A DNA stretch of 62,348 nt, the filler included, from Sluysia triapertura (taxonomy: Eukaryota), in assembly GCA_046118255.1 (NCBI GenBank). It is 5 parts of 5 records of this genome, joined end to end, with 100 filler letters (N's around TTAATTAATTAA, not from the genome) between each part and the next. Parts side by side here need not be neighbours in the genome. Positions count along the whole stretch, not along the records: positions 1 to 13,211 come from JBJNIA010040025.1; 4 more parts are not named here. One strand, 5' to 3'. How positions within the stretch are numbered: the first letter of the stretch is position 1; each line of letters starts with the position of its first letter. Positions 2,767 to 10,340 of this stretch are shown here, piece after piece. The notes under the pieces are model-generated. The model searched no databases, was not told where the DNA came from, and saw only the letters and a program-made list of their open reading frames with translations. A program made the position numbers and the translations under genes.

Positions 2767-3057
2767 TTATTTTCCGAGTCTTCTAACAACCCATAATTGC
2801 TGACATAAGGGGCAATTATTATTCTTTTTGATCCATTGCGAAATACAACAATTATGAAACACATGATTGCATTCACCCCAAACCAAAATGCAGTCATCTA
2901 AACGATTATCATTTTGACAATGAACACAAGGTTCCATTACACCATTACGACAAATTGCGCAATTTTCGCTAGTACATTCCCAACTCCATAAGCCAACTAA
3001 GTTCCATTTTTTGAGAGTAAACAAACTCTTTGGTTCATTACATGAACTTTCGGACAT
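2767..3057 (-). CDS. RNF7: RING-box protein 2 (RBX2/SAG/RNF7), RING-H2 subunit of cullin-5 E3 ligases; intronless CDS
   Basis: Intact 96-aa ORF with FTLKKWN..LWSW..CAICR..C..C..C..VWGECNH.FHNCC..W.K.NN.CPLCQQ.WVV.R.GK; the WGECNHxFHNCC and CPLCQQxWVVxRxGK end fit RBX2 rather than RBX1. Confidence 0.95.
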   Translation of the reverse strand: MSESSCNEPKSLFTLKKWNLVGLWSWECTSENCAICRNGVMEPCVHCQNDNRLDDCILVWGECNHVFHNCCISQWIKKNNNCPLCQQLWVVRRLGK

Positions 3058-4329
3058 TAATTTAATGTACTAAACTAAATATAAAAAGATAAGCAATATA
3101 AAAATTAAACTTGAAATTATTAAACTTAATGATTAAATTATTTACAAAAATCATGTGAGTAAATATTGAAATCATTACTTGTATTAAACCAGATAATTAC
3201 TTAAAATTAATATTTCATTCATAAAAATATAATAAATAAAATTTTTAAATAATTAAAACAAAGCATAAATATTTAAAAAATGTAAATTTCGGTAATGATA
3301 TTTAACTTCCACAGAAATTGTATATATTTAAAATCCTTTAAACTGTCAAGGTAAAAAATTGAATTACCTGAAATTATAAATTACATCTAATAATCATTAT
3401 AATAGCAGCAGCAATAATATTTTAGGGTTAATAACTTTACCTGTTAAAGCTTAGTATAATGATTTAATACCATGCTTGTTTTAAATAGTATTTAAAGAAT
3501 TTTTAAATGCAAAAATTTGCTATTTAACCATTAAACAAAAAATCATTAAAAAATTACTATGCAAAAAATCGTACGACAAAAATTTGTCTACCACAAGTGA
3601 ACATTTCTATAGAAAATAAAATTAAATTTTATAAACACCAAATTTGATAATCCAGATTTAATTAATTTGATCATTTTGATTCAGTTTACACTATAATGGT
3701 CGTAAGGCGTTTATTTTGATTAATTTAGTTATATTAAGAAAGAAAAATGAAATGGAAAAGTTTGATGAGATTCTGACTTAAAGACCTGCGAATTGTTATT
3801 AAATTTGTGAATTGGAGAAAACTTTAATTTTATTAAAATTAACAAACAAAAACTATAATTAAAATTAACACAGAAAAATAAAATTAAATAACTAAAGTCG
3901 AAATGTATTGAGCGCGAGCAAAAAACATAAATTTAATGTTCATGCAACCTGTCGTTCCTAACTTCGTAAGAATTTCGAATACACGTTGCAACAAGTCAAC
4001 ACGAGTTCTGAACCTGTAGTAATCGCACCAGAATTTTGAGTCTGTCCTGCAAAGAGTGGCCATTGAGATCACACAATCCATAACTTGTGGAGAGAGAGAC
4101 TCGAATTAGCATAAGCTTTGACTCTATTAGATAGGATGTAATGAGTCTTTCTACTGACAGACTCTTTAAGATCCATATTTGAAAAGATATGTTGAGCATT
4201 GATAAGTTCACAACATCGAATCAAATGACTAAAAGATAAAAGTTAAAAATAAAAATTATAAAGAATGATATAAGACAAAAAAAAACTTAGATGTTTGAAC
4301 AATAGAAATCCGTCTTGTAAATCGCCGAC

Positions 4330-4582
4330 AAGATCCAAAGACAACCTTGTTATCTTCTTCTGCAGTTTTCACGGATTTTATATCAAAATTTTCTAAATTC
4401 ATTCCAACGATCGGCGTCGTTTTTGCATCACCTTAGGCAACTTTTTGAAAATGAACACATTGATAAGTTAAAATTAATCTGTGAGCTTGAATCTCTAAAT
4501 TCGTAATTCTGCTGGTAACATCGGTCAGAATTTTTTCTCTTTGAAAGTCAAGTATAAACGAGTTTCTTTCTTCCACATAACT
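4330..4582 (-). pseudogene. BTB/POZ-domain pseudogene fragment
   Basis: Manual translation: DFQREKILTDVTSRITNLEIQAHRLILTYQCVHFQKVA*GDAKTTPIVGMNLENFDIKSVK (TDVT..AHRLIL..F signature, internal TAA); decayed coding-like sequence continues to about 3884. Confidence 0.7.
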
Positions 4583-4881
4583 TTAACATTTTTCAACATT
4601 CAAAAATTTTTTAAACATTAACAAAGAATTGAATATTAAAACAAGAACTTAAAAAACATCATAATCACATAAAGTCATTAATATTTTACATCAAAATTTT
4701 ATTTACGGATATTTTTGCAATACAAGTATGTATGTCACCTGCAAAATTTAATACATATACAACTCGAAATAGATAAAATGTGAATGAAACAGAGCAATTA
4801 AATTGATATAATTCATAAGAATTGGAATTTTAACTTGAATAAGAAAAACATTTTTTATTTTACTGACATTTTATTATGTAG

Positions 4882-5020
4882 ATGACCAAACCTGAACAAA
4901 ACGCTGAAGAATTCCGAAATGGTTGTGTTTATAATTTTCAAGAATTAACTTCGTGTTAAGTCATTGAAATAAATTTTATTTTCATCATAGCACGCATTCG
5001 TACTCATGTACAGTATTTAT
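4882..5020 (+). pseudogene. Decayed ORF of unknown family upstream of motif pair 5310/5509; similar to 54761-54900
   Basis: CVYNFQELTSC*VIEINFIFIIARIR aligns loosely with CVYKC*KIFSLDFSLECYILIIRIR at 54761-54900. Confidence 0.3.
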
Positions 5021-5309
5021 AAATTTATAAATTTATAAATTTTCCTTCTAAATATCCTTCAGTAAATCAAGTAGATAGTCTGATTAAGTTTGATCAATCT
5101 AATTATTGTTGAAATAATTTTAAAATACAGACATATACATGATAAACAACAGGGAGAATTAGAATTCTAGGCGTGTTGCCAAAATGGACGAAGAAGGCGA
5201 TATCAACCAGAACACCTATGATTCATTTATCATTAATATAATTTGTAGATTACAATGATTTTATATATTGCAAGAAATGATTGTGGAGAATAAATATAAA
5301 TTAATTAAT

Positions 5310-5361
5310 GTGAGTTCACCAACGTACTGGACTTACCAGCGAGGGCCAGCTGTTGGATTTT
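5310..5361 (+). ncRNA. Candidate structured RNA motif M, copy 1
   Basis: GTGAGTTCA CCAACG TA CTGG ACTTAC CAGCGA GGG CCAG C TGTTGG ATTTT; P1 CCAACG/TGTTGG, P2 CTGG/CCAG. Confidence 0.55.
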
Positions 5362-5508
5362 AACGTAAGAAAAAGATACTTAACTTTAAACTATGGAGAT
5401 TTTACCTAACTCCTTAATTCTGGAAGTAAATTCTTGAAAATTTAATTATATGTCAAATGTTCGGTTTTCTTACTACTCGAACAATTATGAATAAATTTTT
5501 TAAGTTGT

Positions 5509-5562
5509 TGGGTCCGCCTACGCTAAACGATTTACCTATAATGGGCGTTCACGTATGATTTT
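5509..5562 (+). ncRNA. Candidate structured RNA motif M, copy 2
   Basis: TGGGTCCG CCTACG CTA AACG ATTTAC CTATAAT GGG CGTT CA CGTATG ATTTT; P2 AACG/CGTT covaries with copy 1. Confidence 0.55.
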
Positions 5563-6122
5563 AAAGCTTTGTCAAATAATAGCTGAAGGTCACAAGAATA
5601 CTATGTTCTTTATCTTTTCTTTAGAAAACATATTCTTTAATTTATATTTTTAATTCTGTATTTCAAATTCTTTATACTATAAAAACCTTTTTACTTTTAA
5701 TTTATATTTACTAGTAACAAATTACAGTTTTATGAACCTTATTCAATGACTCAATTACTTTATCAAAAATCTTTAATCTTTTTATCTTCTTTAATATATC
5801 TTAATATATTGTTTAAAATTTTATCTTAGTTCCTTTATATGTTTTAATTCAAACTTTTTATTTCACACTTGTTAATTTAATTATTCTTCTAAACTTTATT
5901 TAGTAATTCTTTAATTGCGAAAACTTAATAAATCTTTTTAATCAAATTCTTACTCGTAATGATAACAAAGAAAAAACAAGGTAGTCTCTGAACTTTTATT
6001 AATAACAACTTTTAACTATATAAAAAATTATTAATATACACAAACGAAATATACAAAAGACTCAAATAATGATAACGCAATAAAATATAATAAAAATATA
6101 TATATATTTCAATTTTGAGTAT

Positions 6123-6185
6123 GATTTTGACCCAGAAGTTACTTTTGGGTTTTTGCTAAAATGTTTATAAAGATTTTAAGTAGAA
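6123..6185 (+). other. Conserved downstream hairpin motif C
   Basis: GATTTTG ACCCAGAAG tta CTTTTGGGT ... AAAATGT ... GATTTTAAGT; homologs near 16752, 23640, 31900, 33036, 55693. Confidence 0.55.
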
Positions 6186-7262
6186 TATTAAGACCGTTAA
6201 CAAATCGGGTCGAAAATCTTAACATTAAAAGCTTACTTAAAATTTAATAAAAAGGTTGTCTGCTGGTTTCCACTGAATACGATTGAGCCAAATATTACTG
6301 AATGCGACCAAGTTAAATTGGAATAATTGTGAGTTAAATCAAAGCGTACGTAATTACCAAATTTGTAAATTGAACAAATATATTTTATCAAATCGACCAA
6401 AATATATCGAACCAAGTATATAGAACCAATTATAAATCGACCCAATTATATCGAACCAAAATTTCAAATCGTTATTCAAAATTAATTTTAAAAAAATTCC
6501 TCCTTTTATTTGTGCTTGTACAAACTTCTGTATCTATAAATTGTTATTCCTCTTAAATAGTAAATCCAGACCTTTTATACTAATTTGACGTTTGATTGAC
6601 TGATAATATTTTAATTAAATGTTTATTTAAATATTAGACTTCCTTTTTTCAAATATATTTTGTATAAACATAGATATTCGATTAAATAAATAATTTAATT
6701 TAAAATTTTACCATATCCGTTTGACTTAATTATGAACAATTAAATAAATACAGTCATGTTTTACTAAATTATAAACAATTTATTTCCTTGATTCTGATTT
6801 ATAATAAAATTATAAATTTATTTTCTTAATGCTAAATAAAATTAATACTTTTAATAATTACAAAAATTTCTTTAAAATTTAATATTTCTAATTTGTTATA
6901 TACAAAAATATAATTACAAAAATTTCTTGCTAAGATTATTTTATTTACAATACGAATGCACATTTATCCCTCATTTTAATATTTTTTCACTATTTCAAAG
7001 TACTTAAGTCATAACCTTTACACTCTATTAACATCTTCAGTTACAAACATTATTCCATCTTAACATTTAATCTCCATACACCATCAAAGATACCTAGTTT
7101 GTTTAAATAGATTGTAATATCTTCAGAAGGTAAACACATAAAAGAAAGATCATGTGTAATTCACAGAACCAGAGAATTTATGCGTTTTTAGGATAATAAT
7201 AATGATAATATTTTATTATTATATTATTATTACCATTTTTATTTTTATTAACTTTATTTATT

Positions 7263-7410
7263 AGGTAACTACCACTACCAGTGGTGACTGTATTAATTTA
7301 CATTTACAGTCAATGTCACCGCTGATAATTTGTGTGTCTATTGGCCATCCAACCAAAACAAGTATCACTGATTTAATCAGTACAATACTTCTGGTTGGAT
7401 GACCAATCAA
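7263..7410 (+). promoter_or_regulatory. Double-hairpin / CCAAT-rich repeat E, copy 1
   Basis: CAGTGGTGAC..GTCACCGCTG hairpin followed by TTGGCCATCCAACCA..TGGTTGGATGACCAA hairpin; homologs at 12000-12192 (+) and 21110-21285 (-). Confidence 0.5.
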
Positions 7411-7606
7411 TACTTACTTTTTTACCATTGAGAATTTCTATGCTATTATTGTACAAGCAGTCAATAATCACAATATCTAAAAATTATTTTCTCAATTACA
7501 ATAGTCATACACTAGTTAATTTGGTAACAATTTTACGGTATGAAAAATTTTTCAACTAAAAGATTAACATTACGGATATTTATTGTACATTAAATAACCA
7601 ATTATT

Positions 7607-7840
7607 ATGGATATTCCTACGTCTTCATGTAGTTCTGACTATGCTTGTTCTGATAATAAAAAAGATCATGACTACAGAGCTAACCATTATAAAGATGATG
7701 AATCACAAGGCAATTTATGTCAAACTCGTTGGCTACATGCGGATTCTGATGCGTCTATTTGATACTGACAAAGAAGGAATTTGTGTCAAATAAGGGAACG
7801 GCTGTAATTATGCCCATACAGTAGAAGGACTGATGAATTC
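7607..7840 (+). pseudogene. Unkempt-type CCCH zinc-finger pseudogene, copy 1
   Basis: MDIPTSS..NHYKDDES, then frameshift to YMRILMRLFDTDKEGICVK*GNGCNYAHTVEGL, resembling the Unkempt finger pattern YKT..C..ETD..G.C.KNG..CAFAH. Confidence 0.55.
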
Positions 7841-8032
7841 GTACACCAATTCGTTACTAAACATCAATCATCTTTACTGGATCGGTAACATCCTAAGATC
7901 CTTCGAAACATCAAAATCTGATACGATTTTGATAAGGATGTAATTAAATTTTACACTGATAATAATATTATAATTTTTTAGTTTTTTTAGATAGCGGAGT
8001 GGGACATACTACTCGGGACAGTATTTTTATCT

Positions 8033-8034
<2 letters not shown>

Positions 8035-8067
<33 letters not shown>
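8035..8067. repeat. (TA)n microsatellite
   Basis: Perfect TA run. Confidence 0.95.
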
Positions 8068-8070
<3 letters not shown>

Positions 8071-9134
8071 TCGAATAAAATTTTGTGTTAATTTTATCTA
8101 TTACCGTATGTTATAAAGTTTAAAATAATATTTTTAATGAACCAATTTTAAAATATAAAAAACCCCAACACAATATACGTAAGGTATTAAATAAATTATA
8201 ATCCAATATTATTAACAATGCAATTTCATGTGACAAAATAATGTTACTATTTTAGAAGTTAGAAGAAAATATTTCAATTATAATAAATAAAATTTCTTGT
8301 TGTTTAATCACAAAAAAAGACAATAAAGAATTTAAAAATAAACACAATAAATAGAAAATAAACAAATAAATAATCTCGAATAAAAAAATTAAAATTTAGA
8401 TTTTTTAATTTTAATTAAATTTTTAAATAAAACATTTGATATTATATTTTTTTTATAATTAAATCTAATAAATAACTAATCAATATTATTAAATATTAAT
8501 TTGAAATACAGAAAATGTTTTCTTAATTGCAAATATTCAGTTAAGCATGTAATTAAATTAGTATTTTTTGAATTAAAAATTAATTTATAATTAATTTATA
8601 ATTAATTTATAATTTATATATAAACTTGATTAATGTTGAACGGAACGATATATCAATCTAGAATTTGTTGCTAGGTTTAAACAATTATAAATATGATCGT
8701 TTATTTAGTAAATCATTCTTTACCTTTCGATTAGCATTTTTTAATGTTTGACAATGATCATTTTTAAGAATAATTTAATTAATACTTATTTTAAATAATA
8801 ATGATAATAATACAATTCAAAACTTAATAAATCTAAGGAATTTGCTAAGTATTTATTTTGAAAAAGAATCTTCTTCAATAAAGCATACATCGATAGAAAC
8901 AGAAGACATGTTTGAATACAAATTTTATAAATTATATCTGTGTATTTCTGAATCAATTGTTGTCTAAGCATTAAGAATATCTTATAGAAAGTTTGGAAAA
9001 TTATGTATGATTAATTTTTGAGTAGGAAAGTACATATTTATTTGTTGATTTAGCTGATTGGTGTCGTTACAATACTTATGTCATTGTAAATTCTTATTGT
9101 GATCACAGTACGAACAAATTATATTATTAATTTC

Positions 9135-9759: not shown

Positions 9760-9830
9760 TTGACGTTTATTGTAACCGGACCCTGCTCAAAAAATAATTT
9801 GACTTAGGTTAAGTGTTAGAAAAACACAGC
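9760..9830 (-). repeat. Motif D plus 5' half of motif M
   Basis: rc: GCTGTGTTTTTCTAACACTTAA..GCAGGGTCCG GTTACAA TA AACG; a further partial copy with the 3' half lies at 10218-10282 (-). Confidence 0.5.
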
Positions 9831-10296
9831 ATTTTAAACTAGCATCAGTTTAAAGTCATTTTGAAAATGTCTAGTTAAGTTATTTTTATTATGGTCAGTA
9901 CTATTAGTAAAATATTAGTATCATAAATACACGTAAATATTTCCATTTTTAAGTGAATATTTATTAAGTTTCCTCGATAAAATCCACGTAAAATTATTCT
10001 AAATGCAAATTAAAGATCATTGGTGGTTTAAATTTTAATAATTGTATGTTTTTGTTGCTACTTTATTCTTGGAATATTAAATTGTGAATTTATTGGTTCT
10101 TATTTTAGATTTAATAAATATATTGCATAAGCATTAAGTAAATACCCTAATTAACATTCGATCGATTAGTAGATCCGAATGATAAGATTAAAATTAAATT
10201 ATTTATTAAATTAGCAAGTTACATGAACATCCACTACACAGTATAAGACGTTCAGAAATATGCAGTGTTAGAAAAACTGCAACAGTTTATCAAATC

Positions 10297-10297
<1 letters not shown>

Positions 10298-10340
<43 letters not shown>
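10298..10340. repeat. (TAA)n microsatellite
   Basis: Pure TAA run; similar runs at 34943-35020 and 52138-52200. Confidence 0.9.

Follow-up and report, generated by a model that had tools for sequence, protein, structure and literature searches.

A covarying two-stem motif at the core of the terminal module in a very large superfamily of mobile elements of Sluysia triapertura

What is the short motif that recurs here with constant linkers and changing stems, and what does it do for the sequences that carry it? The window, by which we mean the whole stretch of 62,348 nucleotides that was analysed, consists of five parts joined from the Sluysia triapertura assembly GCA_046118255.1 (eukaryotic, 619 Mb in 263,945 contigs, 25% GC). 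The piece of it that holds the two copies described below, copies A and B of motif M, is contig C40025, eukaryotic nuclear DNA with a G+C content of 25%. Neither a tRNA nor an ORF of more than 96 aa (code 11) was found in this piece, and its sole Rfam match was a sub-threshold MIR827-like hairpin at 7327-7417. This hairpin, on the minus strand, is long and near-perfect (ATTGGTCATCCAACCAG...TTGGTTGGATGGCCAAT). It scored 30.8 bits (E = 0.02) against a gathering score of 65 and is probably a foldback repeat, not the plant miRNA MIR827. At 2770-3069 of the window (minus strand), a 100-aa open frame contains an RBX1-type RING-H2 finger (zf-rbx1, E = 4.6e-21; zf-ANAPC11, 1.6e-12). This frame, which lies about 2.2 kb away from the M elements, probably represents an exon of an RBX1 or APC11-like host gene.

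Copies of M were detected with a covariance model built on 45 copies. With E <= 1, the model returned copies A and B only from the piece that includes 5311-5562 (Table 1), and these are the full copies that a first-pass annotation had placed at 5310+ and 5509+. Copy A reads, in order, TGAGTTCA, CCAACG, TA, CTGG, ACTTACCAGCGAGGG, CCAG, C, TGTTGG and ATTTT, and copy B reads TGGGTCCG, CCTACG, CTA, AACG, ATTTACCTATAATGGG, CGTT, CA, CGTATG and ATTTT. The same annotation had listed partial or divergent sites at 9785- and 10260-, and both turned out to be fragments (about 9831-9761 and 10284-10221). The former, from a third family, lacks the remainder of M and was not detected by the covariance model; two copies in locus L090 match it. 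The latter is preceded by a (TTA)n run at 10297-10330. The count of about 11 copies given at first pass was a gross underestimate, as the genome holds roughly 10^4: a degenerate M pattern matched 11,764 times, compared with 307 times for the reversed control. A stricter B-type pattern gave 2,211 matches against 172 in the control, and the covariance model recovered 82 copies from 195 kb of fetched loci. The A-type and B-type cores had zero matches in metagenome scans, and a text search of the literature for the motif sequences returned unrelated mycobacterial primers only.

Table 1. Positions of M, of the elements that carry it and of coding neighbours. Plain coordinates are those of the window; coordinates with a locus name are those of fetched loci.
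Feature	Position	Strand	Description
Family A element	5269-5457		189 nt at sharp terminus TGCAAGAAATG...; BLAST to 9 other copies, flank alignment
Box AGAATAAA	5287-5294	+	About 22 nt before M; conserved in A-type families
Motif M, copy A	5311-5361		Covariance model, 69 bits
Copy A, leader TGAGTTCA	5311-5318		
Copy A, P1	5319-5324 / 5351-5356		CCAACG / TGTTGG
Copy A, TA linker	5325-5326		
Copy A, P2	5327-5330 / 5346-5349		CTGG / CCAG
Copy A, apical loop ACTTACCAGCGAGGG	5331-5345		Holds invariant TTA and GG
Copy A, ATTTT	5357-5361		
Block CTGGAAGTAA	5420-5429	+	Local form of CTGRAGGTRA
Family B element	5458-6245		About 790 bp; terminus TGTTCGG at 5458; far end (6245) approximate, set where k-mer depth falls and copies diverge
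Terminal hairpin of B	5458-5483		TGTTCG, 14-nt T-rich loop GTTTTCTTACTACT, CGAACA
Box ATTATAAAA or AATAAA, B-type families	5490-5495 here		The same ~22 nt before M
Motif M, copy B	5509-5562		Covariance model, 61.5 bits
Copy B, leader TGGGTCCG	5509-5516		
Copy B, P1	5517-5522 / 5552-5557		CCTACG / CGTATG; one mismatch
Copy B, P2	5526-5529 / 5546-5549		AACG / CGTT
Copy B, ATTTT	5558-5562		
Copy B form of CTGRAGGTRA block	5583-5592		CTGAAGGTCA
Third-family fragment	9761-9831	-	Terminal module TGCTGTG..., leader AGGGTCCG, 5' half of P1
Fragment	10221-10284	-	Terminal hairpin TGTTGCAG...CTGCA and degenerate loop region
R2-superfamily LINE, C-terminal part	L014:2470-3036	-	Frameshifted; RHN motif, FFVGALGSWNPEN block
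Gypsy-like element	L059:1-1493	-	Degenerate Ty3/gypsy-like gag-protease-RT; RVT_1 E = 5e-10

The two-stem structure of M is real. In the model alignment, 89.9% of the P1 and P2 cells pair, compared with 22-41% when the partners are slid. Both sides changed in 11 of the 12 stem pairs, and none of 500 shuffles matched the observed P1/P2 values. These results bear out the stem covariation reported at first pass. Stem variants in the printed copies include CCTGTG/CACAGG, CCTGAAG/CTTCAGG, CATGTA/TACATG, CTAATTAG/CTAATTAG, ACACG/CGTGT and TTGTG/CACAA. RNAalifold, given one copy from each of 14 families, recovered P1 and P2 together with an apical YUU/RGR helix that has two conserved U-G pairs and one UA/CG exchange; it returned no structure for the 82-row model alignment, for which gaps and cut rows are probably to blame. 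The fold is a single extended bulged hairpin of ordinary stability (z -1.2 to +0.9). About 14 positions of M are invariant, and they lie in the leader, in the TTA and GG of the loop and in the 3' ATTT.

The first-pass annotation had further proposed that M acts as a single strand of defined polarity and that its leader pairs with the loop as a pseudoknot. Both proposals are unproven, because the energy, wobble and leader-loop tests were null. The mean folding energy of 70 distinct copies was -12.5 kcal/mol on the plus strand and -12.4 kcal/mol on the minus strand, P1 contained 12 G-U against 7 A-C, and the covarying stems were unbiased. Leader-loop pairing was compatible in 98.7% of cells, which is no higher than in shuffles (98.9%), and 0 pairs changed on both sides; the alternative GUYC/GGRC pairing was no better supported. 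We also considered a spliced-leader or U1-like origin, given the GTGAGT and ACTTACC of A-type families, and rejected it, as B-type families have no GT donor. M is a genuine, covarying structured motif, previously uncatalogued.

M very probably represents the core of a terminal module, conserved over about 200 nt, that is shared by many non-coding interspersed families, about 10^4 copies in all, and the superfamily that bears it seems to dominate the repeats of this genome. Flanks were compared around M for the ~75 copies listed. M started 45-50 nt from a base-sharp terminus in every family examined and was the most conserved part of the module. The elements are about 0.8-1 kb long, AT-rich and devoid of ORFs, and their bodies are wholly different between families. 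They begin with TG(T): A-type families with TGTRAGAAA, and B-type families with TGTTCGG, which pairs with CGAACA about 20 nt further on as a hairpin that is conserved among B-type copies. An AATAAA or TATAAA box lies about 22-24 nt ahead of M at a spacing kept in both types, and a CTGRAGGTRA block is conserved 60-90 nt past M, also in both. A tRNA-derived head or a Pol III B box was looked for and rejected (ARAGORN was blank in the piece that holds copies A and B and in 34 loci, and the elements have many T runs). Near one divergent M copy, at L076:424-933 on the plus strand, a ribosomal protein L24e domain (E = 6.6e-22) was noted within an open frame.

In the window, family A ends at 5457, where it is cut by the family B terminus at 5458; elsewhere it extends 0.7-1 kb further right. 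The repeat of copy A has more than 1,000 near-identical relatives. For family B, 179 exact termini were found, all with unrelated upstream sequence. The insertion sites of family B showed a loose TA-N preference, and several were in (TAA)n or (TTA)n runs; M-bearing elements as a whole favour TA-rich and (TAA)n sites. The base before the B terminus was, by eye, a mixture of A, T, C and G, with T not fixed. Copies are 94-97% alike, which implies recent activity.

M is a branch point that fragments this assembly. The k-mer depths, taken from one contig-level sequencing run, were about 50-fold higher over M of copy A than over its flanks (~431,000 over M and 3,000-8,600 beside it), and in copy B they were 71,000 over M and 450-870 in the body. 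Contigs diverged exactly at the M edges of copy A, 5305 and 5361. We noticed many contigs that stop 10-90 nt past an M facing outward (for example C454, C584, C1393, C246 and C596). M-bearing elements also often stood head-to-tail, either 150-400 nt or about 1-1.5 kb apart, as at 5307-5563 of the window and in loci L024, L027, L029 and L090. Such proximity is far commoner than a density of one per tens of kb predicts, which suggests nested or targeted insertion into kin.

The two ends of the elements behaved differently. The M-side terminus was always intact, and it carried no A-rich or regular tail. The far end of family A varied between copies. A perfect 14-bp palindrome, GTTTTAATCTGACC TT GGTCAGATTAAAAC, lies about 720 nt from the M-side terminus of family A; 9 of 40 copies ended at its centre, and other copies ended at varied points. 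The palindrome is at L059:1494-1525, and the same site was recognised in L053, L054, L057, L060 and L061. Unrelated DNA followed the palindrome centre in the two sequenced cases, L058 and L059. In the single case of L059, the A copy ends at the palindrome centre and shares a 5-nt microhomology, CTTGG, with a gypsy gag target. The k-mer depth along the family B body was flat, and thus there is no 5'-truncation gradient in B. No duplication of 9 nt or more was found around ends of which the far ones are known inexactly; a possible 3-4-bp duplication was seen in two of five family B copies. Searches for terminal inverted repeats and LTR pairs found none, the terminal 40 nt had no inverted match within 3.5 kb except for one weak case in L049, and reuse of the stem sequence as a subterminal inverted repeat was not found.

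Given these properties, M is the cis-acting core of an end module that a very large superfamily of mobile elements has in common, and its hairpin is most likely recognised by the enzyme that copies the elements. The first-pass annotation had offered either a new ribozyme class or a signal for reverse transcription, packaging or stability. The second half of that proposal is close to the evidence, in view of the fixed 45-50 nt between M and the terminus; the ribozyme half is not (see below). The intact M-side end, the variable far end of family A that stops at a hairpin and the one microhomology junction favour reverse transcription that starts from the M-side end. Microhomology is seen at the 5' junctions of target-primed insertions. 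If reverse transcription starts there, the minus strand is the sense strand and the complement of M lies in the 3' tail. We therefore lean, tentatively and with less than even confidence, towards M being a stem-loop in the 3' tail of minus-strand RNA, to which the reverse transcriptase of a partner LINE would bind.

Under this mechanism, the M-bearing elements would be non-LTR retroposons, and the minus strand of the window would represent their RNA sense strand. About 45-50 nt from the 3' end of this RNA, the reverse complement of M would fold into a stem-loop with bulges, to which the reverse transcriptase of an autonomous LINE partner would bind to start target-primed reverse transcription. 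The stems would covary because they need only pair, and the bulged and looped positions (TA, TTA and GG, with ATTT and TGRGTYC in the flanks) would stay constant because the protein reads them; we counted this combination of covarying stems and invariant unpaired bases in favour of the mechanism. Unrelated bodies could then hitch-hike on the common tail, much as LINE tails are used by SINEs and by elements with internal deletions. Several observations count against it. No autonomous element with M was found. The depth of B is flat, clear target-site duplications are lacking, and there is no A-rich or regular tail. The apical U-G wobbles, if they are real pairs, favour the plus strand. Finally, the AATAAA/TATAAA box could be a TATA box, which would put M at the 5' end of an RNA.

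A candidate partner would be an abundant R2-superfamily LINE with a restriction-like endonuclease. Fragments of R2-superfamily LINEs are numerous in this genome. The C-terminal domain of the LINE in L014 can be aligned to the restriction-like endonuclease domain in R2 proteins of solved structure. Homologues of this LINE have an RT in the centre and lack an AP endonuclease, and in the PDB they match R2 proteins best. The best genome matches included at least 30 copies of its coding part, and the LINE is thus not an rDNA-only element. In L014, an M-bearing element of the same sense starts 86 nt downstream of the LINE ORF. L014 was nevertheless rejected as the autonomous partner: the ORF and the M repeats belong to separate repeat families, and no second copy was found to span the two. 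At L014:2515-2540 (minus strand), the last LINE ORF codons contain a tRNA-like T-arm, GGGTTCGATTCCC, just past the end of LINE similarity and about 95 nt before the M-bearing element; ARAGORN called no tRNA at this site. In L062 (reverse strand, 576-1693), the far end of a family A copy is adjoined by a 5'-truncated L2/CR1-like LINE that has a YADD motif and, at its C-terminus, a HWLPIKARIEFK block; no M was found in the 3' region of this LINE. Homologous LINEs of other organisms (L093-L095) were tried as M carriers, and no M was found in them.

It is also possible, though doubtful, that M works as a hairpin in single-stranded DNA, is recognised by a Rep or a transposase and belongs to a non-autonomous DNA transposon, with DINE-1/HINE as the nearest model. 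Helitrons and Helentrons have a palindrome 8-35 bp from the 3' end. DINE-1/HINE elements combine a palindrome at the terminus with a core conserved over about 90 bp and a variable body with microsatellites and no ORF; their stem-loops keep pairing by compensatory changes, and their insertion sites are T/A-rich (PMC2374699, PMC4067079). Helentron-type marks are 12-15-bp subterminal inverted repeats and 5-11-bp palindromes (PMC2374699, PMC4067079). The M-bearing elements resemble this layout (PMC2374699, PMC4067079) in that a terminal hairpin, TGTTCG...CGAACA, a nearby conserved core and unrelated bodies are combined, and further in their AT-rich microsatellites, T/A-rich insertion sites and the absence of a long duplication. 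The covarying stems favour neither strand, the flat depth of B indicates that the copies are mostly full length, and the possible 3-4-bp duplication would fit as well. However, Helitron_like_N (PF14214) is near-absent from the genome (15 candidates, 4 weak fragments, best E-value 3e-6), although the likeness of the copies implies recent activity. The subterminal inverted repeats were not found, T is not fixed before the terminus, and insertion between T and T (or A and T) was not the rule. The A copies truncated at the palindrome, one of them with a microhomology junction, suit reverse transcription better.

A third reading keeps M in RNA but reverses the strand: M would be a plus-strand structured element at or near an RNA 5' end, like a TAR-type leader or the R2 5' protein-binding RNA, and the box would be a TATA element about 25 nt upstream. 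We regard this as unlikely. The box-to-M spacing is conserved in both superfamilies, but AT-rich boxes are cheap in a genome of 25% GC. The conserved U-G wobbles of YUU/RGR become A-C mismatches on the opposite strand, each variable position of the leader and the loop is compatible with wobble pairing on the plus strand, and CTGRAG|GTRA, 60-90 nt downstream of M, looks like a splice donor. Against this, the leader-loop pairing lacks covariation, retroposition would strip an upstream promoter from anything but an LTR or DNA element, and retroposon 5' ends are usually truncated, yet the M-side end is always intact.

It is very unlikely that M is a small Pol III-type hairpin RNA gene with a TATA-like box, a transcript of about 55 nt and an ATTTT terminator. 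The box stands about 22-24 nt before M and the ATTT(T) directly after P1' is near-invariant, but several families have ATTTG, ATTCA or ATTAT and thus not four T. In addition, a total stem of about 13-15 bp is too short for Dicer-type processing, known small-RNA families were unmatched, and neither the fixed distance to the terminus nor the conserved 90 nt past M would be explained.

We give hardly any credence to M, alone or with a leader pseudoknot, as a new self-cleaving ribozyme that processes element transcripts. M is compact, combines about 14 invariant unpaired bases with covarying stems, resides in a mobile element and is absent from Rfam. Among the Rfam 15 ribozymes (hammerhead, HDV-like, twister, twister-sister, pistol, hatchet and hairpin), none matched the piece that holds copies A and B (cut-off E <= 1) or 64 kb of sequence with at least 20 copies of M (cut-off E <= 0.5). 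However, M is a linear bulged hairpin with no multi-helix junction, its pseudoknot shows no covariation, its stability is ordinary, and it sits 45-50 nt inside the element and not at a processing boundary; moreover, invariant bulges with free stems are the pattern of protein-binding hairpins too. The related idea that M and the wobble-compatible leader-loop pairing make up a new plus-strand catalytic or autonomous RNA fold, which self-cleaves or self-primes element transcripts, appears just as remote. M is not currently evidence for a new ribozyme.

Equally improbable is that the repeats are solo LTRs with M as a hairpin in U3 or R. The TG(T) starts and 0.7-1 kb sizes would suit LTRs, and in L059 one A copy directly precedes a gypsy-like gag-protease-RT that runs in its orientation; TGG stands where the two meet, as an LTR beside a primer-binding site would look. 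About 35-45 related gypsy copies are present in the genome, and in other copies the gag coding sequence continues upstream of the L059 junction point. The junction is thus mid-gag and the A copy interrupts gag, for which reason the LTR reading of L059 was rejected; no CA 3' ends, like pairs at LTR spacing or primer-binding site were seen.

M unifies what appears to be the dominant repeat superfamily of this genome, at whose copies the assembly breaks. As a 52-nt handle with covarying stems and about 14 fixed bases, it can be used for repeat annotation, for the search for an autonomous partner and for tests of template recognition. Should the partner prove to be an R2-superfamily LINE without rDNA specificity, M would offer a compact, natural tag by which enzymes of that class recognise their template.

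Three known systems invite comparison. Ribozymes of mobile elements include the hammerhead in Penelope-like elements and retrozymes and HDV-like ribozymes in R2 and RTE. M is like them a small structured RNA-like motif in thousands of repeats, but it has no Rfam match and no hammerhead core (CUGAUGA...GAAA), its helices follow an order that does not match the nested double pseudoknot of HDV-like ribozymes, and it is not at the element boundary where HDV-like ribozymes cleave. With DINE-1/HINE, the M elements share the terminal palindrome, the core near one end, the variable microsatellite body, the compensatory stems, the T/A-rich sites and the lack of an ORF. They differ in that no 12-15-bp subterminal inverted repeats were found, in the lack of a strict TT target, in the near absence of a Helitron-type Rep from this genome and in that M is longer and more elaborate than 5-11-bp palindromes. 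Stringent LINEs have 3'-tail stem-loops in common with their SINE or deletion-derived parasites, as in eel UnaL2/UnaSINE1 and the R2 3' UTR. Unlike in these, no LINE with M was found and the sense strand of M is only inferred, 45-50 further conserved nt follow M, with a second terminal hairpin in B-type families, and a regular short-repeat tail is absent. As in these, a short structured segment lies beside a fixed terminus and is common to unrelated non-coding families, its stems change in a compensatory manner, its loop and bulge bases are fixed, and no poly(A) tail is present.
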